Origin: Lepidodermella squamata
Taxonomy: Eukaryota > Animalia > Gastrotricha
Direction: 5' to 3'
Length of the DNA stretch: 64,000 bases
Assembly: GCA_047495785.1 (NCBI GenBank)
Contig: JBLDXI010000042.1
Location: forward strand, 2,604,001-2,668,000
Below the pieces are notes generated by a model. The model saw only the letters and a program-made list of their open reading frames with translations. It was not told where the DNA came from and did not search any database. This document shows positions 32,494-44,217 of the stretch, one piece after another. The first letter of the stretch is position 1. Every line of letters begins with the position of its first letter. The translations under genes were made by a program, and so were the position numbers.

Positions 32494-35400
32494 ATGGCTT
32501 GGATTGACTCAAGCTGTCCGCTCAGAAATGCTAAGAGAGTGCAGTTCGGCATTTTATCGCCAGAAGAAATTGTAAGTTGACTACTCATTGTTAAAATGGC
32601 AACTGATTATTGATCTTTTTCCAGCGGCGGATGTCAGTCACAGAAGGTGGTATCACCTTTCCTGGCACTATGGAGGCTGGCAAGCCGAAGCTTTGCGGTT
32701 TGATGGATCCTCGGCAGGGTGTCATTGAGCGAACGGGCAAATGTTTGACTTGCTCATGTGATATGAACACATGTCCTGGTCATTTTGGCCACGTTGAACT
32801 GGCCCGCCCGGTTTACCACATTGGCTGGCTTACAAAAACTATAAAAATTCTTCGCTGCGTATGCTTTTACTGCGCAAAAATGCTCGTCGACTCAGTAAGC
32901 GTTGTTACGTGTAATGTGCTAACTATTTTATCGGTTTTGTTGTTGTCAGGATAGCCCTGCAATTAAAGAAGCTATTGCAAAGACTCGACTAAGCCCGCGT
33001 CGTCGACTCGCCCTCGTATATGAGCTGTGCAAATCCAGAAATATTTGCGAAGGCGCAGAAGAAGACGTACCAGGTGGTCAGCCGGTGAAGGAGGAGGAAG
33101 ACGATTTTGGCCTAAAGAAAAAGAAGAAGGGCTTTGTGAAAGGTGGCTGCGGGCGCTATCAACCTCAGTACCGCCGTCAAGGCCTCGAGTTGACAGCAGA
33201 ATGGAAACATCAAAACGATGACACCCAAGAGCGTAAAATAATTTTAACTGCCGAGCGCGTTCTCGAAGTATTTCGGCGTGTGTCTGACATTGACTGCTTC
33301 GCATTGGGTATGGACCCGCGTTGGGCTCGTCCCGATTGGATGATAATATCGGTTCTTCCCGTTGCACCATTGTGCGTTCGACCTTCAGTTGTCATGTTCG
33401 GCACGACTCGAAATCAAGACGATTTGACTCACAAATTGGCTGATATAGTCAAGTGGAACAATCAGTTGAAGAGGAATGAACAAAATGGTGCAGCTGCACA
33501 TATCATTGCTGAGGATGTAAAGATGCTTCAATATCACGTAGCCACGCTTTTCGACAATGAAATTCCCGGTCTTCCTAAGGCTACACAAAAATCCGGTCGT
33601 CCCCTCAAATCAATCAAACAAAGATTAAAGGGGAAAGAAGGTCGTATTCGAGGCAATTTGATGGGTAAACGTGTCGATTTCTCCGGTCGTACTGTCATCA
33701 CGCCTGATCCGAATCTACGGATTGATCAAGTCGGCGTTCCTCGAACAATTGCTCAGAATTTGACGTTTCCTGAGATTGTCTCCCCGCTCAACATGGACTA
33801 CCTGCGAGAGCTCGTAGAACGTGGTCCGAATCAATATCCTGGTGCTCGATACATCATTCGAGATGATGGTACTCGAATCGATTTGCGATTCAATCCTCGC
33901 CCTGCTGATCTCCACCTTCAACCCGGTTATAAGGTGGAACGACATATGCGAGATGGCGATGCTGTCGTTTTCAATCGTCAGCCCACTCTTCACAAGATGT
34001 CTATGATGTGTCACAGAGTCAAGGTGCTTCCATGGTCTACTTTCCGCCTTAATCTTTCAGTAACAACCCCGTACAACGCCGATTTCGACGGTGACGAAAT
34101 GAATCTTCATTTGCCTCAATCATACGAGGCGAGAGCTGAAATTCTCGAGTTGGCTTTGGTACCTCGTCTCATCATCACACCCCAAGCCAATCGACCTGTC
34201 ATGGGTATTGTGCAAGATACGCTGACAGCTTCCAACAAAATGACAAAGCGCGACGTTTTCATCGAAAAAGAAAACGTGATGAACCTGCTGCTTCAAATTC
34301 CTCATTGGAACGGCATTATCCCCCAGCCGGCTATTCTCAAGCCAAAACCACTATGGACCGGTAAACAGCTGTTCTCACTGACCATTCCTGGCAAGGTTAA
34401 CTGCGTCAGAACCCACAACGCCCATCCTGACGATGAAGATCGAGGGCCATACAAGTGGCTATCCCCGGGTGATACGAAGGTCCTAATCGAAAACGGCGAG
34501 CTGATTTGCGGAATGTTGGACAAACGCACACTCGGTCCGTCTAGCGGTTCTCTCATGCACATTGTCGCTTTGGAGTTGACCCACGTTGAAGCCGGCGAGT
34601 TTTACGGCCACATTCAAACCCTCATCAACAACTGGCTGCTAATCGATGGTCACACAATCGGTATTGGTGACACTATCGCCGACCCTCAGACCTACGAGGA
34701 GATCCAGGAAACGATTAAATCCGCCAAAAATCGTGTGTATGAAGTCATTGAAAAAGCGCATCACGACGACTTGGAGCCCACCCCTGGTAACACGTTGCGT
34801 CAAACTTTCGAGAACACCGTGAATCACCTCTTGAACGACGCCCGTGACAAAACTGGTGGTTCTGCTCAGCGTTCGTTGTCAGAGTTCAACAACTTCAAGG
34901 CGATGGTCGTTTCCGGTGCGAAAGGTTCGAAAATTAACATTTCTCAGGTCATCGCCTGTGTCGGTCAGCAAAACGTCGAAGGTAAACGTATTCCGTTCGG
35001 CTTCTCGCGGCGTACCCTGCCTCATTTCATCAAGGACGACTACGGTCCTGAGTCGAAGGGTTTCGTCGAGAACTCTTACCTCGCCGGTCTGACCCCGTCC
35101 GAATTCTTCTTCCACGCCATGGGAGGTCGTGAAGGTCTTATCGATACCGCCGTCAAAACTGCCGAAACCGGTTACATCCAACGTCGTCTCATCAAGTCCA
35201 TGGAGTCAGTCATGGTCAAATACGACGGAACTATTCGTAACCAGCTCGAGCAGATGGTTCAATTCCGTTACGGTGAAGATGGCCTCGACGCGACTCGAGT
35301 CGAGTTCCAGAACTTGCTATCGTACAAGCCTAGCGACAAAGCCTTCGAAAAATCGTTCAGGTTCGACCTGAATAATCAAAAGCAGTTGAATGACGTGTTC

Positions 35401-38400
35401 AACGACGATCTTGTGCGAGAGATTTCAGGTGACACCAAACTCCCTCTTGAAATCGACCTCGAATTCGAGCAGTTATCAAAGGATCGTCGCGAGCTGCGAA
35501 TGTTGTTCAAAAATGGAAACGCTCGAGTTGTCCTACCGTGTAATATCGAACGTTTAGTTTGGAACGCGCAGAAAATTTTCAAAATCGACACCCGCCGTCC
35601 TACAGATCTCAACCCACTTCAAGTCGTGCAAAGTGTCCGAGACCTTTGCGAGCGACTGGTCATCGTGAAGGGCGAGGACCGTTTGAGTAAAGAAGCTAAC
35701 CGAAACGCAACTTTGCTGATTGATACTCACATTCGATCATCACTGTGCACGAAACGAGCCTGCGTCGACTATCGGTTGAGCACTGCGGCCTTCGAATGGC
35801 TGGTTGGTGAAATTGAGTCGCGCTTCAACCAGGCCATGGCCCATCCGGGTGAAATGGTTGGTCCCCTCGCCGCCCAGTCTCTCGGTGAGCCGGCTACTCA
35901 GATGACACTGAACACTTTCCACTACGCCGGTGTGTCGGCTAAGAACGTAACACTCGGTGTGCCGCGTTTGAAGGAAATCATCAACGTGTCGAAGAAGCCG
36001 AAGACCCCCTCGCTCACTGTTTTCTTGACTGGTCAGGCTGCTAAAGACGCGGAACGAGCCAAGGATGTTCTCTGTCGACTTGAGCACACAACTCTTCGAA
36101 AAGTCACAGCAAACACGGCGATTTACTACGATCCAGATCCTAAGAACACGGTACGTATTTATGGTTTAGAAATTTCCACTGTATTTAAGCTGAATATTTC
36201 ACCGCCCAACTTGAACTTTTTTAAGGAGGATTTAAAAAATAATAATTATCAACAGGGTTGCTACGTGAAATGTTTAGCTTAAAGTGGAAATTCCGCATTA
36301 GACTTTCTGTGATGAAATGTGTGACTTGCCCTCTATCTGATCAAACTTGATTATTAAGTCTAATTAACCTGATTTTAAAATTGAAAATTTTAACCAATTT
36401 TTCCATATTTTCTTGCGAAAATAACCTTTTTTACGTTTTAATTTCAGCTGATTGCCGAGGATCAAGATTTCGTGTCGATTTACTACGAGATGTCTGAAGT
36501 CGACCCGTCTCGGTTGTCGCCATGGTTGCTACGTATCGAGCTCGATCGCAAGCGTATGACCGACAAAAAGCTGACAATGGAACAGATTTCGGAGAAAATT
36601 TCCCTCGCTTTCGGCGAAGATCTTAACTGCATGTTCAACGACGATAACGCTGAGAAGCTCATCTTGCGTATTCGCATCACCTCGAACCCTGAAGAGAAGG
36701 TCGCCGAGCAAATGGATAACGATGGCGGGCAGGTCGTGGTCGAATCCGCGAATCGCATGGACGACTACATGTTCTTGCGGTGTATCGAGGCTAATCTGCT
36801 CAGTGATTTGACCCTCCAGGGCATCGAAGCTATTTCGAAGGTCTACATGCATCTTCCGAAAACTGAAGACAAGAAGCGCATCGTTATTACCGACACTGGT
36901 GAATTCAAGGGCATTGCCGAGTGGATTCTCGAAACCGACGGTACTGCGTTGCAGCAGGTCTTGAGTGAGCGTGACGTGAATAACTCGAGAACATTCACCA
37001 ACGACGTCGTTGAAATTTTTTCGGTACTCGGTATCGAAGCTGTGCGTAAATCCATCGAAAACGAGATGAATAACGTCATTTCTTTCGACGGCTCGTACGT
37101 CAACTACCGTCATTTAGCCCTGCTTTGCGAGGTTATGACTGCAAAGGGCCATTTGATGGCTATTACCCGTCACGGTATCAACCGGCAAGACACTGGTGCG
37201 CTGGCGAGGTGCTCGTTCGAAGAAACTGTCGACATTTTGTTGGACGCGGCGAGTCATGGTGAAAGTGACCCGTTGCGTGGTGTCTCCGAAAACATTATGA
37301 TGGGTCAACTTGGTCGGTTGGGCACCGGGTCGTTCGAGTTACTACTCGACGCTGAGAAGTGTAGACAAGCCATGGAAATTCCGATGGGACCTGGTTTGGG
37401 AATGGGCATGACTGGTATGCTGGAGGCCGGTCCGAGCCAAATCACCCCCTGGCACGACTTGTCAGCTCAAACCCCTGCCTATGTCGGCGATATGTTCCCT
37501 GGTGGCGCTACCCCTGGTGGTTTTGGGGTGGGTGCCTTCTCACCCAGCGCTCAGTCTGAAGTCGGTCTTTCGCCCGGCTACAGCCCTGGTTGGTCACCAT
37601 CCGGCGGCATGTCACCCTCAGCGAGCCCGATGAGCCCTTATGTACCCAGCCCGGGGCAACATTCGCCATCTTATTCGCCGACTTCGCCTCTATACATGCC
37701 GCAATCACCGGCTAGCCCTGGTCTACCGGGTGGTCTCGCCTCGCCGACTTACAGCCCGAGCTACTCGCCATCTACGCCAGCCTATCCACCGGCTAGCCCT
37801 CACTACAGCCCGACCAGCCCGAGTTACAGTCCAACTTCGCCATCATACAGCCCGACGTCGCCTTCCTACTCGCCATCGAGTCCTAAATTCAGCCCGACCA
37901 GTCCGACTTACAGTCCAACTAGCCCGAGCTACAGCCCCACATCGCCGTCGTACTCGCCTTCTAGTCCGAAGTTCAGTCCGACTAGTCCTACCTACAGCCC
38001 GACAAGGTAATTTGAATTCATAATTCTACCCAAAATGACGCTTTTATGATGAGATTTTTGACTTGCCCTCTATTAGTTTACCGATGATTATTAAGTCCTT
38101 ACTGATTCAAGCTTTATACTCAATTTTCGAAGCGTGTAATTTTGCATGGTTTAATGCGATTTTTTTTCAAATTTTAAGCCCGTCGTACAGTCCGACTTCG
38201 CCTTCTTACTCGCCATCGAGTCCGAAATTCAGTCCGACAAGTCCGACCTACAGTCCAACAAGGTAATTATTTCAGCGATTTTCGTGTACATATTCAGAAC
38301 TTATTTTCCTATTTTAGCCCGACGTACAGCCCAACATCGCCGTCTTATTCACCGTCGAGCCCGAATTTCAGCCCTACTTCTCCGACTTACAGCCCAACCA

Positions 38401-38826
38401 GGTTTGTATTCGATTACCTTTCAGTAACAGATTGCCGATTTTATGATGATTTTTCAAGACTTGCCCTATATGAATCATTTGATTATTAGTCCTCATAACT
38501 GATAGAATTCTTTTTAGTAGAGATTTATGGCTTTTTGTATCTTTGTCAAATTTTTTATTCCAATTTTCTGATTTTCCAGTCCGGTTTATTCACCAACATC
38601 TCCCGCGGTCTATTCGCCATCGTCACCTGCCGCGTATTCACCGACGTACTCGCCAACTTCGCCGCGTTACACACCTGGCTCGCCTGAATACAGCCCATCT
38701 AATATAACATCGCCAGCCTACACTCCTCGCACTCCGGCGACACCCGGCCAACCGGAGGCAAGACGCGACGGCGCCGGTCCATCCGGAACCGGAGGTCGAG
38801 GCGCTCAGGGCGGAGCGAAACGTTGA
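32494..38826 (+). CDS. POLR2A: RNA polymerase II largest subunit; exons approx. 32494-32571, 32625-32895, 32950-36150, 36448-38006, 38179-38262, 38318-38401, 38580-38826
   Basis: [37 protein letters not shown] active site, [11 protein letters not shown] trigger loop, YSPTSPS heptads; AATAAA at 39108. Confidence 0.99.
36309..36372 (+). ncRNA. Box C/D snoRNA copy 1 (type A), RPB1 intron 3
   Basis: GTGATGA...GACTTGCCCTCTAT-CTGA...TTGATTA...AAGTC...CTGA; D box 75 nt from the 3' splice site. Confidence 0.88.
38046..38105 (+). ncRNA. Box C/D snoRNA copy 2 (type C, degenerate D'), RPB1 intron 4
   Basis: ATGATGA...GACTTGCCCTCTAT-TAGT...ATGATTA...AAGTC...CTGA; 73 nt from the 3' splice site. Confidence 0.85.
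38443..38502 (+). ncRNA. Box C/D snoRNA copy 3 (type B), RPB1 intron 6
   Basis: ATGATGA...AGACTTGCCCTAT-ATGA...TTGATTA...AGTCC...CTGA; 77 nt from the 3' splice site. Confidence 0.88.
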
Positions 38827-39266
38827 TTTGATCCGCAACTTGTATAATCTTAACTTCTAAATTTTCTAGACTTCACACCAGAACCTTGAAATGTTTAGAG
38901 CTGCTTGGTTGTCTATTTCACTGCTCCTCATCTCACACGCCTGCGTTTCTTTAGTTGACGTCGCGGCGATGTGTTGATTTCTACGCTTAGGGATCATGCT
39001 TTCTTTCGAGCGCAATATTCAACCTAACAACTGCTCTTGTCTTACTGCATTCAATTAATTCATTCATTTTGTGATTACAGTTTTCGTATACGGTGTCTTA
39101 TCTTGACAATAAAGATCCATCACCATCTTTGGATAAATCCAGGGTGACTTTTTATTAATTTTTTTACGGTGTATTTCTAGGTTAATAATTTGGTTTTTAC
39201 GCTACGCATGAAGTTGGGCCGAAATCAAGGTATTTTATTTATCGAGGTGAAACGAGTTGTTTGATA

Positions 39267-39329
39267 GTGATGATATTCGTGACTTGCCCTCTATCTGAGC
39301 TTCGGCTTTGATAATTAAGTCTAATCTGA
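39267..39329 (+). ncRNA. Box C/D snoRNA copy 4 (type A)
   Basis: GTGATGA, guide GACTTGCCCTCTAT, D' CTGA, AGC-TTCG-GCT hairpin, C' TTGATAA, D CTGA. Confidence 0.9.
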
Positions 39330-39479
39330 AAACAGAGGGAAAGAAATGAATTTTTCCGACAACGTTTCGGTGGCTAAATTTTATTTGTGTACAGGTTCAA
39401 TTGTTGCTGATGGAAATAGAAAATTGGCGTAAATACGAGGTAAGATTTAAAAACATCTCGATTAGCAAAACTAGAGTTT

Positions 39480-39542
39480 ATGATGATATTCGTGACTTGC
39501 CCTCTATCTGAGTCAAGACCTTGACTTTTAAGTCTTTTCTGA
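39480..39542 (+). ncRNA. Box C/D snoRNA copy 5 (type A)
   Basis: ATGATGA, GACTTGCCCTCTAT-CTGA, terminal CTGA; nearly identical to copy 12. Confidence 0.9.
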
Positions 39543-39704
39543 TTAGCGCATGTATCGCCTTGATTTGAGAGGTTTGAGCGCAGTAATTGATTGTTTTTTC
39601 AACGTTTTATCAGACTGCAAACGGCGTTGTTCCTGATCAAGTTGGTCTGAAATCTCAAGGTGATTTTTCAATAAAACTTGTAGGATATTGCGGTGTTTTA
39701 TAAC

Positions 39705-39766
39705 CTGATGAATTTGAAGACTTGCCCTATATGAAAAAATCTTGATTATCAGTCCACAAATACTGA
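39705..39766 (+). ncRNA. Box C/D snoRNA copy 6 (type B)
   Basis: CTGATGA, AGACTTGCCCTAT-ATGA, TTGATTA, CTGA. Confidence 0.87.
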
Positions 39767-40075
39767 AAATACTTATAAATGCTTGGAAGGAAGAAGAAAC
39801 TCATGTTCTCGATTTTTACACGGTTTTTAATTTGCAGTTTTTCGGGCTTGAAGATCGTTGAGAAAAAGGCGGATCTACCCTCGAACGAGCTTGATGGCGA
39901 ATGGCAATTAAAAGAGGGCTTGATTGAAGCTCTTGAAAAATGAAGTTGCGATCAAAGAAACATCGACAGAAATATTTGCGACCTGTGTCGACTTCTCAAG
40001 TTCAGCGGATCTTGAGTTCAATGGAATCCTATGATGAGGTAATGCTCGGAAATATTCGTATTATCAATCGCAATT

Positions 40076-40135
40076 ATGATGAGAATTTCGACTTGCCCTC
40101 TCTTAGTAAATCAATGATTATTAAGTCTTAACTGA
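40076..40135 (+). ncRNA. Box C/D snoRNA copy 7 (type C)
   Basis: ATGATGA, GACTTGCCCTCTCT-TAGT, ATGATTA, CTGA; resembles copy 2. Confidence 0.85.
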
Positions 40136-40317
40136 ATGAATTTGAAACCTAGCTTTATCGAACGGATTATTTGTGGACCTTACGAGAACAAACCTTGTTA
40201 TTTCCAGGTGGATGCTGAACAAACTAGATCTGTTGGATCGAGAGCGACAAATGATCGTTCCCAAATGTCAAGCGAAAACGGTACGCATGAGATGTTTTAA
40301 TTGGATTTTATGCTAAA

Positions 40318-40380
40318 GTGATGAGATTTGTGACTTGCCCTCTATCTGAACTTTGGTTTTGATATTTAAGTCTACTCTGA
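40318..40380 (+). ncRNA. Box C/D snoRNA copy 8 (type A)
   Basis: GTGATGA, GACTTGCCCTCTAT-CTGA, TTGATAT, CTGA. Confidence 0.9.
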
Positions 40381-40562
40381 CTGCAGAAGTCATCTCGCAC
40401 TAGCATAGGTGGCTAAATATTTTATTTTTCTAGTGTTCTTCTCTCTTTTTCAGGCCGCTTGCGTTTATCCCGAAAACCAAGGCCAAATCGTCACACAGGT
40501 CAAGGCGTGGCATACAATGTAAGCTCCTTTGTCTTGCTATATTGAAGATACCATTTTACATT

Positions 40563-40624
40563 ATGATGATTTAAAAGACTTGCCCTATATGATGTTAGTG
40601 ATTTATAGTCCAAAATTAAGCTGA
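40563..40624 (+). ncRNA. Box C/D snoRNA copy 9 (type B)
   Basis: ATGATGA, AGACTTGCCCTAT-ATGA, GTGATTT, CTGA. Confidence 0.88.
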
Positions 40625-40782
40625 ATTCAATCTATTGGAGCACTTCATCTCAACAATTTGATTCATTTCTGAAAATATTTCATTTTTCTTTCAGATTGCC
40701 ACAAATCGTCCATGCGATGCGCAAAATTCGATTCTTCTTCATGAGATGTAAGTTTCAAGGATAACTTCCCGAGTTTTATTCT

Positions 40783-40847
40783 GTGATGATATTCGTGACT
40801 TGCCCTCTATCTGAGCTTTATAGCTTTGATAATTAAGTCGATCCTGA
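40783..40847 (+). ncRNA. Box C/D snoRNA copy 10 (type A)
   Basis: GTGATGA, GACTTGCCCTCTAT-CTGA, TTGATAA, CTGA. Confidence 0.9.
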
Positions 40848-41008
40848 TAACTTTCCTCAATTTGTTTCATCAGGAAATTGATCAGTTTTATCTCAAGCTC
40901 ATTTTGTAATCTTTTTCAGGATTCGATTGAGCTCGGTTCGGCTACTGATTCCAGCTGATTCATGAAGGTAGGCTAAACTTCAATTACATTAATTCACGGC
41001 GTTTTTTC

Positions 41009-41068
41009 ATGATGAGTTTCAAGACTTGCCCTATATGAATCCTTGATTATTAGTCCACATTTTACTGA
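41009..41068 (+). ncRNA. Box C/D snoRNA copy 11 (type B)
   Basis: ATGATGA, AGACTTGCCCTAT-ATGA, TTGATTA, CTGA. Confidence 0.9.
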
Positions 41069-41214
41069 TCCTGTGTGAAAATTCATCATTTCTTGCGCTT
41101 TATACCAATATTAATTGCGTTTTTCTTTTCAGGGACAGCCTCTGTATTCATCTTCGTGCGAATTTGCTACTTTCAAGGTAATTTGCGCTAGATATTCATT
41201 GCCTAATTTTTTAA

Positions 41215-41277
41215 ATGATGATATTCGTGACTTGCCCTCTATCTGAGTCAAGACTTTGACTTTTAAGTCTTTTCTGA
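41215..41277 (+). ncRNA. Box C/D snoRNA copy 12 (type A)
   Basis: ATGATGA, GACTTGCCCTCTAT-CTGA, terminal CTGA; nearly identical to copy 5. Confidence 0.9.
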
Positions 41278-41454
41278 TGAAAAGTTACTCTTTTTCACCT
41301 CGTGAATAATTGTTTCCTGGAATAACTTTGATATTTTTTTGTTCAGGTATGCGATGGTCGAAATCAAAGAGACGATGAAGCCAAGGAGCTTTCAAAATGC
41401 AATCTACATTGCCAAGGTGAGCTTTAAACACGATACCCAATTTTTAGAAGTAAA

Positions 41455-41514
41455 ATGATGATTTATAAGACTTGCCCTATATGAAAACATTGATTAGTAG
41501 TCCTTCAGATCTGA
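41455..41514 (+). ncRNA. Box C/D snoRNA copy 13 (type B)
   Basis: ATGATGA, AGACTTGCCCTAT-ATGA, TTGATTA, CTGA. Confidence 0.9.
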
Positions 41515-41660
41515 TTTACCTATCGAATTGATTTTTCAACTGGAAGAAGTATGAGATTTTCTCTAAGTTACCTATTCTTGTTTTCCAGACAACGGACCAG
41601 CTTGGCTAATTTATAAAAAGGTAAATGTTTTTAAATTTCTAATCAATTAAGTCATTTTTG

Positions 41661-41723
41661 GTGATGATATTCGTGACTTGCCCTCTATCTGAGCTTCGGC
41701 CCTGATAATTAAGTCTACTCTGA
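41661..41723 (+). ncRNA. Box C/D snoRNA copy 14 (type A)
   Basis: GTGATGA, GACTTGCCCTCTAT-CTGA, GC-TTCG-GC hairpin, CTGATAA, CTGA; close to copy 4. Confidence 0.9.
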
Positions 41724-41880
41724 TTTACGAGCTTTACGTTATTTAATTATTCGTAAATATTTCTACCATTGGCTTAATCGCTTCTGATTTTGCAGATTTG
41801 ATTCATCACAATGCCACCCAAAACTATTCTACATGCTTCGAGGTAAATAAAGAAAATATATGCCAGCTTTTTCCTAAAAA

Positions 41881-41941
41881 ATGATGATTTAAAAGACTTG
41901 CCCTATATGAAAACACTGATTAGTAGTCCGTTTCAATCTGA
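41881..41941 (+). ncRNA. Box C/D snoRNA copy 15 (type B)
   Basis: ATGATGA, AGACTTGCCCTAT-ATGA, CTGATTA, CTGA; close to copy 13. Confidence 0.9.
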
Positions 41942-44217
41942 TTTTATCAATCTAAGAGATATAAAAAATAAGGAACCAATTTCAGATTTTTCCAATGCTA
42001 ATATTCCATTATTTTTTCCAGACATGGCGATAAGCGAAAAATAACTGTCATCTCTGATTTCTTTGATTTGAAAAGCCTAATTTATGTAATATTTTCGGAA
42101 TAAAATGAAATCGCTCAATTTTTTGGTTAGTTGTTTACTAAACATGAGGAAGTATCGCGTATAAGGCCATTAAACCAGGCTGGTTCGCGAATAACACGCC
42201 ACACTTGCACAAACACGCGAAAGCGGAATCATCGTTTTCACGTTTCTGCTTGATGCTGACACGAGAGGATGCAGATACATGACAGTCAACCGCAAGAGTC
42301 TCGTTTCTGTGTGTGTTTGTAGCCTTCCCTAACAATTTATAGCAAGAGCAAATGTGACACAGACACAAAACGTAGGGCCGCTTAAGTATAAACACTTATG
42401 CTTAGTATTCTCGTGATGACCTCTTCGGCAGCGAAAATTTGCGCGCAACAGCTATTGTTCATCACAGGGCCAGGACAGGCCGAAAGCAGCAACAGCAGAA
42501 TACACACATACAAGACGAGAACCGTTTGGCGGCTCATCGCAACCACAACGACGGCACGTTTTATTTACCCTGGTGGCATCATGGCTCCTAAATGCGAGTG
42601 TATAATTACCTTCCCGGCGCGATGTATAGTTTATTAGGCTGTCTTACCTTTCCGCAGCAGCTGCCTCAATTTAAAGATGATACCTGTCTGTATAAATTCA
42701 AATTACAGTTCCGCATCGCCAAATTTTTTGATAAGAATTTCTTTGCCCGAATAATTATACATCTATATGCCAATCACGTGCTAGCCGTTATCGCAGATGT
42801 GGTATATCTACGTACCATGTTGTTCGGAAAAATGAGGTAGAGGCAACAACAGTTGACCGGTTTTTATTCGGCGGAATCGATGCGAATTGTTTACATTATT
42901 TATACTGTAGCTGCAGAAATTTACACCCTTAAAAAGGCGTCGTGAGGCGCAGCCCACCTTGCGTTCTTATTTTCGCTATTAGGTGTGTCGCTCTCTCTGC
43001 AAAATGCGCGTGTCTGATGACAGCGTAAGTTTAAGCCGCGCAATAAATCGTCGTCCCTGCTTACTATTAATAATATTAATCATGCGTAGGTGAAACTTGG
43101 TTTGATAAATAATGAATAAGTGCTTTTGTTGTGCTGTGTTTCGGCCCATTCCTACTGCGCAAATGCCAGCACCTGTGTTCTTCACACACACGCTCAAGCG
43201 TATATATAGGCTATTTATACATTTCTTGGCCGTGAACACTTTGTGCGGAGAAATATCTCAGCCTTGAGGTGACTGCGCTTACAACAACCACAAAGCCGCT
43301 TTATGCTTGTACGCAGTCCAGTAAAACATGTAATGAGTATGCGCAGGTCACATCTCCAAGCTTTGTGTCATCGGTTTTCGATGAATAAGCGCCTCTGAAT
43401 TATTCTTATAAAAGTATCCACACAGTAAAATGCTTCGTTAGTACAGCGTCTTTGAGGTTAAATTTATTGCTTACTTGAATTCCTCTTACACTAGTTGTCT
43501 AAGGAGGCGGCATTAATAACCGTGACCCTGACTCAATGGAAACGTTTTAATGCGGTGAATAAGCGTGGCACTCCTTATAGAATAATAATGTTGTAGAAAG
43601 GTGGTTTTTTTCAATTGTTGAAAAAAACAAGCGCGATCGAAAATTAAGGTGACTCTTTTAATTAATTCCGCAATATCATTTTTTCGCACATGCTTGTTGA
43701 GCCCTCATTTACATTTACCTATACCCGGCTTGTGGACAAAGCTTATAAAACCAGTGCCGCGTGGCCATTGAGGCGTCGGTTATTTGCGAGTCCATGATGT
43801 TGGCCGCGCCGTTAGTCAAAGGCGGCGTCGCTGATGCTTGATGCGTTTTGTTTATTACCTGCTATTATGAATTAAGTCATTAGCTGTATACACCGTTTTC
43901 TGTCGTGCCAAATGAGCCTGATGCTATAGTTTAAGCACGCCTTAACCAAATTTTCGTATTTTTCGCGCATTATTGCGCTTTATTATCCGCTTGCATTTCA
44001 CCTGTGACGTAATTTACGCGCGCTAATGTCTTCAAAAAATTGGCGCCTCGGTGGTTCAGTCGACCTTGCGGGCGCACCGCCACTTCTCGTTGTCACCAGC
44101 CCAGGAGGACGTCCTTCTATTAGTAGCCCTTTTTATAGGCAACAACACTCTAATCCTAATAATTCGACCAGCTGTTGCCAACTGAAGAGTGATTCGAAGA
44201 GCAACGTCGCTGTCAAG

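Follow-up and report, generated by a model that had tools for sequence, protein, structure and literature searches.

Fifteen probable box C/D snoRNA genes of a single family in introns of RPB1 and an adjacent, apparently non-coding gene of Lepidodermella squamata

The introns of RPB1, which encodes the largest subunit of Pol II, and of a gene located downstream of it carry 15 units in L. squamata that are probably functional genes of one box C/D snoRNA family with a guide complementary to 18S rRNA. The array is a known kind of gene present in an unusually high number of copies, and reveals no new mechanism. The annotation of an animal genome gains 15 guide-RNA genes and a previously unrecognised gene that is apparently non-coding; the predicted target of the guide-RNA genes is concrete and belongs to the decoding-centre region of 18S rRNA. 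Such a scale is uncommon: one or two neighbouring rRNA nucleotides are the predicted target of 15-18 paralogues, which are distributed among RPB1, an RPB1 paralogue and the apparently non-coding host. The locus offers a natural system for the maintenance of snoRNA dosage, the appearance of new methylation sites through a shift of the guide register and the homogenisation of snoRNA paralogues by conversion.

Results and discussion

Anatomy of the units and intron geometry

The analysed window is a stretch of 64,000 nt, and positions are counted from its first nucleotide. Exact matches to the guide sequence GACTTGCCCT occur 15 times, all on the + strand, from 36323 to 41895; with one mismatch allowed the window contains 16 matches against 2.3 ± 1.7 in its shuffles, none of which reached 16. 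In each copy the C box TGATGA is situated 7-8 nt 5′ of GACTTGCCCT and the D box CTGA 41-46 nt downstream of its start, and the elements follow in the order C box, guide, D′, C′ and D box (Table 1). The C box, the guide and the D box are invariant in all 15 copies, and the C box is preceded by a purine in 14 of them and by C in copy 6. According to the D′ box the family comprises seven type A copies with CUGA, six type B copies with AUGA, among which TATATGA is invariant, and two A′ copies in which this box is unrecognisable. Thirteen copies have a UGAU(A/U)A-like C′ box, and the other two have UGACUU. The box C/D architecture and the unit size of about 60-65 nt proposed in the first-pass annotation were thus recovered, the measured distance from C box to D box being 59-64 nt. 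About half of the copies show flanking complementarity that could form a terminal stem (3-7 bp, judged by eye); elsewhere it is weak or lacking. The folding energy of the units is no better than that of shuffled sequence (MFE z-scores from -1.2 to +1.3), as is usual for C/D snoRNAs.

The units also contain a further conserved element, AAGUC or AGUCC, which does not occupy the place of a D+5 guide. Its sequence resembles that of the target and is able to pair with the guide's 5′ part.

All 15 copies reside singly in introns with canonical GT..AG ends, as had been claimed from the sequence, and always on the sense strand of the host. The distance from the 5′ splice site to the C box is 36-46 nt (159 nt in the 297-nt RPB1 intron 3), and the D box precedes the 3′ splice site by 64-80 nt in every copy, the same range as noted before. 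The snoRNA-bearing introns are 165-179 nt long, apart from the one of 297 nt, whereas three ordinary RPB1 introns (the one with the joint 38260->38316 and two 5′ introns) have only 54-55 nt, which matches the earlier estimates of about 165-180, 300 and 55 nt. The uniform placement of the D boxes agrees with the conserved position of intronic C/D snoRNAs, which lie about 50 nt ahead of the branch point (PMC8162545). This position is known to favour splicing-coupled assembly, as had been noted.

Table 1 Features of the snoRNA array in window coordinates
Feature	Position	Strand	Remarks
RPB1 (Pol II largest subunit), ATG to stop	32494..38826	+	six introns; numbers 3, 4 and 6 hold copies 1-3
RPB1 intron 3, host of copy 1	36151..36447	+	297 nt; GT..AG; X1 loose end before 36447 reads upstream exon
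Copy 1, type A	36310..36372	+	63 nt C box to D box; RPB1 intron 3
Copy 2, type A′ (D′ degenerate)	38047..38105	+	RPB1 intron 4 (38007-38178); X1 loose end behind 38006
Copy 3, type B	38444..38502	+	RPB1 intron 6 (38402-38579); joint 38397->38576
Downstream host gene	39120..42118	+	13 short exons, 12 snoRNA introns; 39120 is a model start only
Copy 4, type A	39268..39329	+	intron 39230-39394
Copy 5, type A	39481..39542	+	intron 39440-39613; joint 39437->39612
Copy 6, type B	39706..39766	+	intron 39660-39837; joint 39657->39836
Copy 7, type A′	40077..40135	+	intron 40039-40207; joint 40036->40206
Copy 8, type A	40319..40380	+	intron 40281-40453; joint 40279->40453
Copy 9, type B	40564..40624	+	intron 40519-40694, predicted; joint absent from those listed
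Copy 10, type A	40784..40847	+	intron 40748-40919; variant contig uses acceptor at 40920
Copy 11, type B	41010..41068	+	intron 40968-41132; joint 40965->41131
Copy 12, type A	41216..41277	+	intron 41178-41346; joint 41175->41345
Copy 13, type B	41456..41514	+	intron 41417-41588; variant-contig joint 41406->41587
Copy 14, type A	41662..41723	+	intron 41621-41795; joint 41618->41794
Copy 15, type B	41882..41941	+	intron 41843-42021; joint 41840->42020

Host genes

The identity of RPB1 is established by a phmmer match of 1771 bits to mammalian RPB1 in PDB, extending over 1018 aa; its N-terminal exon also matches, and its exon joins are present in the contigs of run X1, which behave like RNA. Across nine of the 15 snoRNA introns these contigs contain GT..AG joints, and loose ends join the exons across two further introns of RPB1. 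For the downstream host, joints or variant-contig joins are listed at nine of the 12 introns predicted in the first-pass annotation, together with the acceptor of a tenth. An AATAAA signal is located at 42100 with the poly(A) site near 42118, behind which the X1 contigs run into an A-tail. Contigs of the DNA run X2 contain no joints. The joints and the A-tail in X1 and their lack in X2 demonstrate that the host is expressed, spliced and polyadenylated.

The spliced host model of about 930 nt has 14-16 stops in every frame, and its longest open reading frame (111 aa), which extends over several exons, starts at position 304 after four upstream ATGs; the GC content of its exons is 41% versus 54% in RPB1. 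The gene is therefore apparently non-coding, and with this qualification the proposal that the array spans RPB1 (three copies) and an adjacent non-coding host (12 copies) holds. Since no more than about 100 nt separate the AATAAA of RPB1 (39109) from the 5′ end of host exon 1, the host transcript may possibly arise by read-through from RPB1. The tie to the Pol II largest subunit that had been postulated stands as co-location, which is common to the RPB1 paralogue, and extends to nothing beyond it.

Guide, 18S rRNA target and two registers

Each unit contains a 10-nt core complementary to 18S rRNA. The guide pairs with the species' own 18S at 5′-GUGGAGGGCAAGUC-3′, and this rRNA (L001/L005) reads CTAGTGGAGGGCAAGTCTGG, containing A545 and G547; the complementarity to the 5′ side of helix 18 that had been read from the guide is thus confirmed on the rRNA of L. 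squamata itself. The guide covers 18S positions ~541-557 on the 5′ strand of helix 18, including the GGC which, following the established 16S/18S structure, belongs to the 530-loop pseudoknot. The region upstream of the D box revealed no consistent rRNA target.

In type B copies the guide forms 11 consecutive Watson-Crick pairs (positions 3-13), and in type A copies, which have an insertion of 2 nt before D′ and a register shifted accordingly, 14 pairs including two G-U (positions 1-14). The D+5 rule places the methylated nucleotide opposite the fifth guide position (PMC4344503; PMC11014333). On this basis type B is predicted to target G547, the equivalent of human 18S Gm601, and type A to target A545, whereas the register of the two A′ copies is uncertain in view of their missing D′ box. 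A599, the human counterpart of A545, is not known to be methylated. The claim that all copies act on one rRNA site hence holds at the level of one helix and a shared guide; it does not hold for the registers, which point to two sites 2 nt apart, with two copies lacking a recognisable D′ box.

Could every copy guide the single site G547, the 2-nt difference between types A and B being an artefact of D′ calling and the A545 site not existing? All copies share an identical conserved guide portion, D′ boxes are frequently degenerate and are missing from the A′ copies, and G601 is the sole documented site that we found for this guide sequence in a different organism. However, in all seven type A copies a perfect CUGA follows CCC at a distance exactly 2 nt greater than that of the type B AUGA, and the extra CU extends the pairing with 18S (C-G, U-G) to 14 pairs up to the box. 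The shift combined with the extended pairing looks like a real shifted guide, and we regard the single-site reading as possible but rather unlikely.

In the comparison with Rfam that had been proposed earlier, no family reached its gathering score in the window; SNORD103 (RF00188) scored 18.5 bits against a threshold of 45. The Rfam consensus guide of SNORD103, ACUUGCCCUCA followed by CUGA, nevertheless aligns column for column with the units, and its CCCUCA + CUGA is in the same register as CCCUAU + AUGA of type B. SNORD103 is listed as the guide for human 18S G601 (PMC8881200), and with the type B register aligned to its consensus guide the idea of a target new to science was rejected.

That the family might act, like U3 or U14, mainly as a folding or processing chaperone for helix 18 with its 530 pseudoknot, with methylation secondary and the many copies ensuring a stoichiometric supply, is suggested by the coverage of the pseudoknot GGC, by a copy number unusually high for one site and by the AAGUC/AGUCC element outside the D+5 placement. 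Against this, the guide has the exact D+5 geometry of SNORD103, an ordinary methylation guide, and the units revealed neither long nor bipartite complementarity to pre-rRNA. We consider such a primary role improbable.

Conservation, distribution and origin of the copies

Pairwise identity between the units is 62-98%, whereas their intron flanks are at 0.51-0.54 against a shuffled null of 0.50-0.52. As the flanks are at random similarity, every copy at the main locus appears to be maintained by selection, probably for total dosage. It is very unlikely that most copies are redundant leftovers of a neutral tandem amplification of which one or a few are needed. Copies at the paralogue do decay, and the host exons are apparently unconstrained non-coding sequence, as neutral amplification would have it, but all 15 copies of the main locus have kept perfect boxes and guide next to flanks so diverged that neutral copies of such age would have decayed.

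Pattern and model searches of the 121-Mb genome found the family only at the main locus and at a nearby RPB1 paralogue. This paralogue, ~19-25 kb outside the window, retains a single intact copy; in a second copy the guide is mutated, and a third is interrupted by an insertion of ~210 nt. No other SNORD103-like guide was found, the remaining pattern matches being coding sequence. The genome-wide count suggested in the first-pass annotation therefore gives 15 copies at the main locus plus those of the paralogue and reveals no dispersed repeat. This restriction to two linked loci, the constant sense orientation in the host and the full C/D anatomy with the 18S-complementary core in every unit make it scarcely credible that a mobile element, a satellite or a splicing signal is present here instead of RNA genes, even though the units are repeated, short and confined to introns. 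Moreover, the similarity does not extend past the C and D boxes, and neither terminal repeats nor shared flanks are present.

The identity reaches 98% between copies 5 and 12 and 95% between copies 4 and 14; the flanks of these pairs cannot be aligned, and their order is not colinear. Segments of snoRNA size have possibly been exchanged between copies. No base substitutions between strains or alleles are listed inside the units; one listed insertion of 1 nt, at 38496, falls within copy 3.

Proposed mechanism

By the canonical pathway, RPB1 pre-mRNA and the downstream polyadenylated, apparently non-coding RNA would be spliced, and the excised introns debranched and trimmed to snoRNPs of ~60-70 nt with Snu13, Nop56, Nop58 and fibrillarin, whose assembly would benefit from the constant placement ~70 nt ahead of the 3′ splice site. 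We infer that the mature snoRNAs so formed would pair through the guide 5′ of the D′ box with 18S rRNA, including the GGC of the pseudoknot, and direct both 2′-O-methylations to the nucleotides opposite the fifth guide position. The array itself probably expanded through local duplications of old date between the introns of RPB1 and those of the host gene.

A more comprehensive reading is speculative, and as a whole we hold it to be unlikely. Two specialised guides would produce Am545, specific to the lineage, and Gm547, the counterpart of human Gm601, both on the pseudoknot strand of the decoding centre; about 15 copies would be kept so that the snoRNP can prevail in the short kinetic window that precedes the folding of helix 18; sequence likeness among the copies would be preserved by the exchange of segments corresponding exactly to the mature snoRNA, the near-identical pairs with unalignable flanks in non-colinear order hinting at RNA-templated conversion; and AAGUC/AGUCC would act as an internal anti-guide.

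Comparison with known systems

Like SNORD103, the units are intronic box C/D snoRNAs with the guide core ACUUGCCCU(C) 5′ of the D′ box, and type B (but not type A) shares its D+5 register opposite the middle G of AGGGC. Human SNORD103 has three copies, hosted by PUM1, whereas here 15-18 copies occur in RPB1 and an apparently non-coding gene, with type A shifted by 2 nt. Beyond guide and boxes the sequences are unrelated, and the units have 59-64 nt in comparison with 83 in the consensus.

The downstream host resembles UHG, GAS5 and Drosophila Uhg1-8 in being a spliced, polyadenylated transcript with short exons and apparently no credible open reading frame, which carries one snoRNA per intron at a constant distance from the 3′ splice site. 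Seven Uhg lncRNAs of Drosophila together contain 42% of its intronic C/D snoRNAs (PMC11014333). Those hosts mostly carry mixed snoRNAs with different targets, in contrast to the 12 copies of one family found here, and the family described here extends into introns of the upstream protein-coding gene. The array is unusual in comparison with GAS5 and UHG, as had been remarked, but it is not without precedent: in the mammalian tandem arrays SNORD115/SNORD116 and SNORD113/114 one C/D family has been multiplied many times within a repeated non-coding host, whose introns hold a copy each (PMC8162545). The amplification in L. squamata is of the same single-family, one-per-intron kind and differs in its canonical rRNA target and canonical position and in flanks and exons that cannot be aligned.

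Yeast snR40, which guides Gm562 of 18S, provides another case of a C/D-guided Gm in helix 18. Its equivalence to human G601 was considered and rejected, as yeast G562 corresponds to human G611, a different nucleotide 10 nt downstream of G601 (PMC4344503).

Organization of the snoRNA units

The decamer GACTTGCCCT was found 15 times on the plus strand between positions 36323 and 41895, and 16 matches with at most one mismatch were counted in the window, where shuffled sequence would give 2.3. In each copy TGATGA stands 7-8 nt ahead of the decamer, an internal pair of boxes follows it, and a terminal CTGA closes a unit whose length, C box through D box, is 59-64 nt. Alignments within each type defined three unit forms. 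The C and D boxes and the guide are perfect in 15 of 15 units, and the register of the D'-C' hairpin differs from copy to copy. In type A the short hairpin is followed by a C' box resembling TGAT(A/T)A, then by TTAAGTC, a stretch of 4-8 nt and CTGA.

Main features of the snoRNA array and related loci (window coordinates unless a contig is named)
Feature	Position	Strand	Characteristics
RPB1	32494 to 38826	+	six introns
Type A units	copies 1, 4, 5, 8, 10, 12, 14	+	TGATGA, 7 nt, GACTTGCCCTCTAT, CTGA, short hairpin, C' box
Type A' units	copies 2, 7	+	guide as in type A; D' box not recognisable
Type B units	copies 3, 6, 9, 11, 13, 15	+	TGATGA, 5-6 nt, AAGACTTGCCCTAT, ATGA, TGATT, AGTCC, 6-9 nt, CTGA
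RPB1 paralogue (L006)	G000:C42:2686000-2689400	minus	about 19-25 kb past the window end, orientation opposite to RPB1
rDNA unit (L005)	C2:2911000-2920500		18S, 5.8S, 28S; spacer 5S gene on the opposite strand

An invariant element precedes the D box: AAGUC in types A and A', AGUCC in type B. When 18S, 5.8S, 28S and the spacers were scanned with the sequence ahead of the D box, no target recurred consistently across copies, and the distance from the element to the D box varies between 4 and 9 nt; for both reasons the element does not qualify as a D+5 guide. AAGUC is also the 3' part of the rRNA target, and the element is able to pair with GACUU(G) in the guide of its own unit; several copies show this pairing in their minimum-energy fold. 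Such self-pairing is beyond the reach of covariation, since the guide sequence is fixed by its rRNA target. In 18S, GACUU and GGACU were looked for around the target as sites of extra base-pairing; only two distant, uninformative 5-mers came up.

The predicted rRNA target and its two registers

The rDNA unit is 8.46 kb long and present about 500 times in the genome; about 500 occurrences of a conserved 18S 23-mer were counted in the assembly. The 18S rRNA of this species (1817 nt) carries the guide complement at 541-557 (5'-GUGGAGGGCAAGUCUGG-3', including A545 and G547). Type A pairs through its guide at 14 positions, two of them G-U, up to the perfect CUGA; the type B guide forms 11 successive Watson-Crick pairs (positions 3-13) and is followed by AUGA. 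By the D+5 rule for box C/D target nucleotides (PMC4344503; PMC11014333), counting from CUGA, the predicted site of type A is A545, opposite position 5; G547 faces position 5 of type B and is its predicted site. Type A has two extra nucleotides (CU) ahead of D', its predicted site being shifted 2 nt upstream.

At gathering thresholds no Rfam family matched in the window, and at permissive thresholds only generic weak C/D matches appeared. Among these SNORD103 was singled out because its guide aligns with the units: the consensus ...CACUUGCCCUCA followed by CUGA corresponds to them column for column, and its position 5 lies opposite the middle G of AGGGC, which is the type B register. With a score of 18.5 bits against a gathering score of 45 the array family falls below the RF00188 cut-off and was not filed under that family. 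Numbering from human G626, which we take to be the equivalent of E. coli G530, gives A599, G600, G601, G602 and C603 for the target. This agrees with the listing of SNORD103 as the guide of human 18S G601 (PMC8881200). Given the shared position-5 register and that listing, type B is, as a predicted guide, the functional counterpart of SNORD103, while type A would act alike 2 nt away. Yeast Gm562, guided by snR40, was considered as an equivalent target and rejected, since yeast G562 is another helix-18 nucleotide, corresponding to human G611 and not to G601 (PMC4344503). Literature searches returned nothing relevant on Gm601/A599, and on helix 18 by RiboMeth-seq a yeast study only.

Host genes and intron geometry

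The 1022-aa exon of RPB1 scored 1771 bits against mammalian RPB1 and about 1220-1270 bits against fungal RPB1, a difference that marks its source as an animal. Three of the six RPB1 introns are short (54-55 nt); those containing copies 1, 2 and 3 measure 297, 172 and 178 nt. Behind RPB1 follow 12 more GT..AG introns of 165-179 nt with one snoRNA copy apiece, separated by exons of 32-201 nt. The C box lies 36-46 nt from the 5' splice site, except in the long RPB1 intron, where 159 nt separate the two; in all snoRNA introns 64-80 nt remain between the end of the D box and the 3' splice site. The latter spacing agrees with the placement conserved among intronic C/D snoRNAs, which are best located about 50 nt ahead of the branch point, where snoRNP assembly coupled to splicing is promoted (PMC8162545).

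The spliced model of the host gene behind RPB1 is about 930 nt long. Its longest ORF (111 aa) starts at position 304 behind four ATGs, each frame has 14-16 stops, and the GC content of the exons is 41% vs 54% for RPB1, so the gene is most likely non-coding. As its 5' end lies about 100 nt or less from the RPB1 AATAAA at 39109, the host transcript could also arise by read-through from RPB1. A weak Rfam snoZ196/R39/R59 match (26.6 bits, threshold 55) was observed on the plus strand at 39063-39137, in the RPB1 3' UTR or intergenic DNA; it has an 11-nt complement to the species' own 28S at 1037-1047 and no D box, and may be a decayed snoRNA or chance.

Splicing of the host transcript

Splicing was read from contigs of two public runs that contain the stretch. 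Contigs of the RNA-like run X1 behave as RNA and join exons at GT..AG borders of the predicted introns (38397->38576, 39437->39612, 39657->39836, 40036->40206, 40279->40453, 40965->41131, 41175->41345, 41618->41794 and 41840->42020). A 55-nt RPB1 intron is also spliced out, and loose ends connect RPB1 exons over 36151-36447 and 38007-38178. One contig ends in an A-run after 42118, with AATAAA at 42100. The DNA-like run X2 covers both exons and introns and contains no splice joints. The first-pass description of 15 box C/D units, exactly one per intron, proved right.

A second, diverged X1 contig (depth 75.6, positions 39646-42025) has exon joints also at 40920 and 41587; its remaining joints are imprecise, with non-GT..AG edges, exons 5 and 7 are apparently skipped, and variant letters stand at two junctions. 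The contig may stem from a different allele or strain, or from alternative splicing of the host RNA.

Genomic distribution and history of the family

Patterns and sequence models applied to the whole 121-Mb assembly confined the family to the contig of the window (C42), where three copies in an RPB1 paralogue add to the 15; the motif is not a dispersed repeat. A match at C87:19847 was rejected as a further copy, having no D box and an unrelated sequence. Other SNORD103-like guides (ACTTGCCCT, 1-6 nt, CTGA) gave extra genomic matches at about background level, and the four inspected were coding sequence.

The paralogue is 91-94% identical in DNA to RPB1, introns included, so the duplication is recent. 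Its unit 3 is intact, unit 1 has a mutated guide (GACAATGCCCT), and about 210 nt of inserted sequence interrupt unit 2. Homology stops about 30 nt past the stop codon, hence no second host array accompanies it.

The units share 62-98% pairwise identity, and similarity among copies is lost about 3 nt or less beyond the C and D boxes. Mean identity of the intron flanks is 0.51 upstream (36 nt) and 0.54 downstream (64-80 nt), against 0.50 and 0.52 in shuffled controls, a contrast with the units that speaks for maintenance of each copy. With flanks so saturated, the dispersal of copies between the RPB1 introns and the host gene is far older than the RPB1 duplication; forms A, A' and B of the RPB1 copies all have counterparts in the host gene. 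The closest pairs are 5/12 (98%), 4/14 (95%) and 13/15 (91%). Pairs 5/12 and 4/14 have flanks that cannot be aligned and are not colinear in order, unlike a segmental duplication; between copies 4 and 5 there are 11 differences, so these positions are free to vary. Together these observations point either to an exchange among copies of segments the size of a snoRNA or to very tight constraint on every position. Among the best-supported differences listed between the assembly and the runs, no base substitution falls inside the units, 12 lie at 39334-39374 directly 3' of copy 4, and a 1-nt insertion at 38496 is inside copy 3; coming from such a listing, the substitution pattern is only suggestive of unit maintenance.

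Comparison with known arrays

Intronic C/D snoRNAs placed one per intron at such a distance from the 3' splice site, in coding and non-coding hosts, are textbook knowledge, and the exceptional novelty claimed at first reading was not borne out. Single-family arrays likewise have a precedent in the SNORD116 repeats (PMC8162545). The array is real and its general type already known. Less usual are the many copies retained for a single conserved rRNA site, the two guide registers within one family, its extension over RPB1, the RPB1 paralogue and a non-coding neighbour, and conservation limited strictly to the units. The suggestion that high dosage may serve methylation and/or chaperoning of helix 18 is not supported by the present analyses.

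A metagenome scan for relatives yielded 120 loci, all single chance-like matches, mostly in other contexts, and none combining a D box with the AGUC element; the scan supplied no cross-species support. Two related low-GC metagenome contigs (L027 and L036) carry AATGATGA, 6 nt and GACTTGCCCTTTAT, then CTGC or TTGC. Neither shows a clear D box, and the resemblance may be due to chance or to a remote SNORD103-like gene in another eukaryote.

Nearly identical coding stretches occur on contig pairs C7 and C32 (L008/L009) and C10 and C48 (L010/L011), so parts of the assembly are doubled, as uncollapsed haplotypes or recent duplicates. The snoRNA array is present only once.
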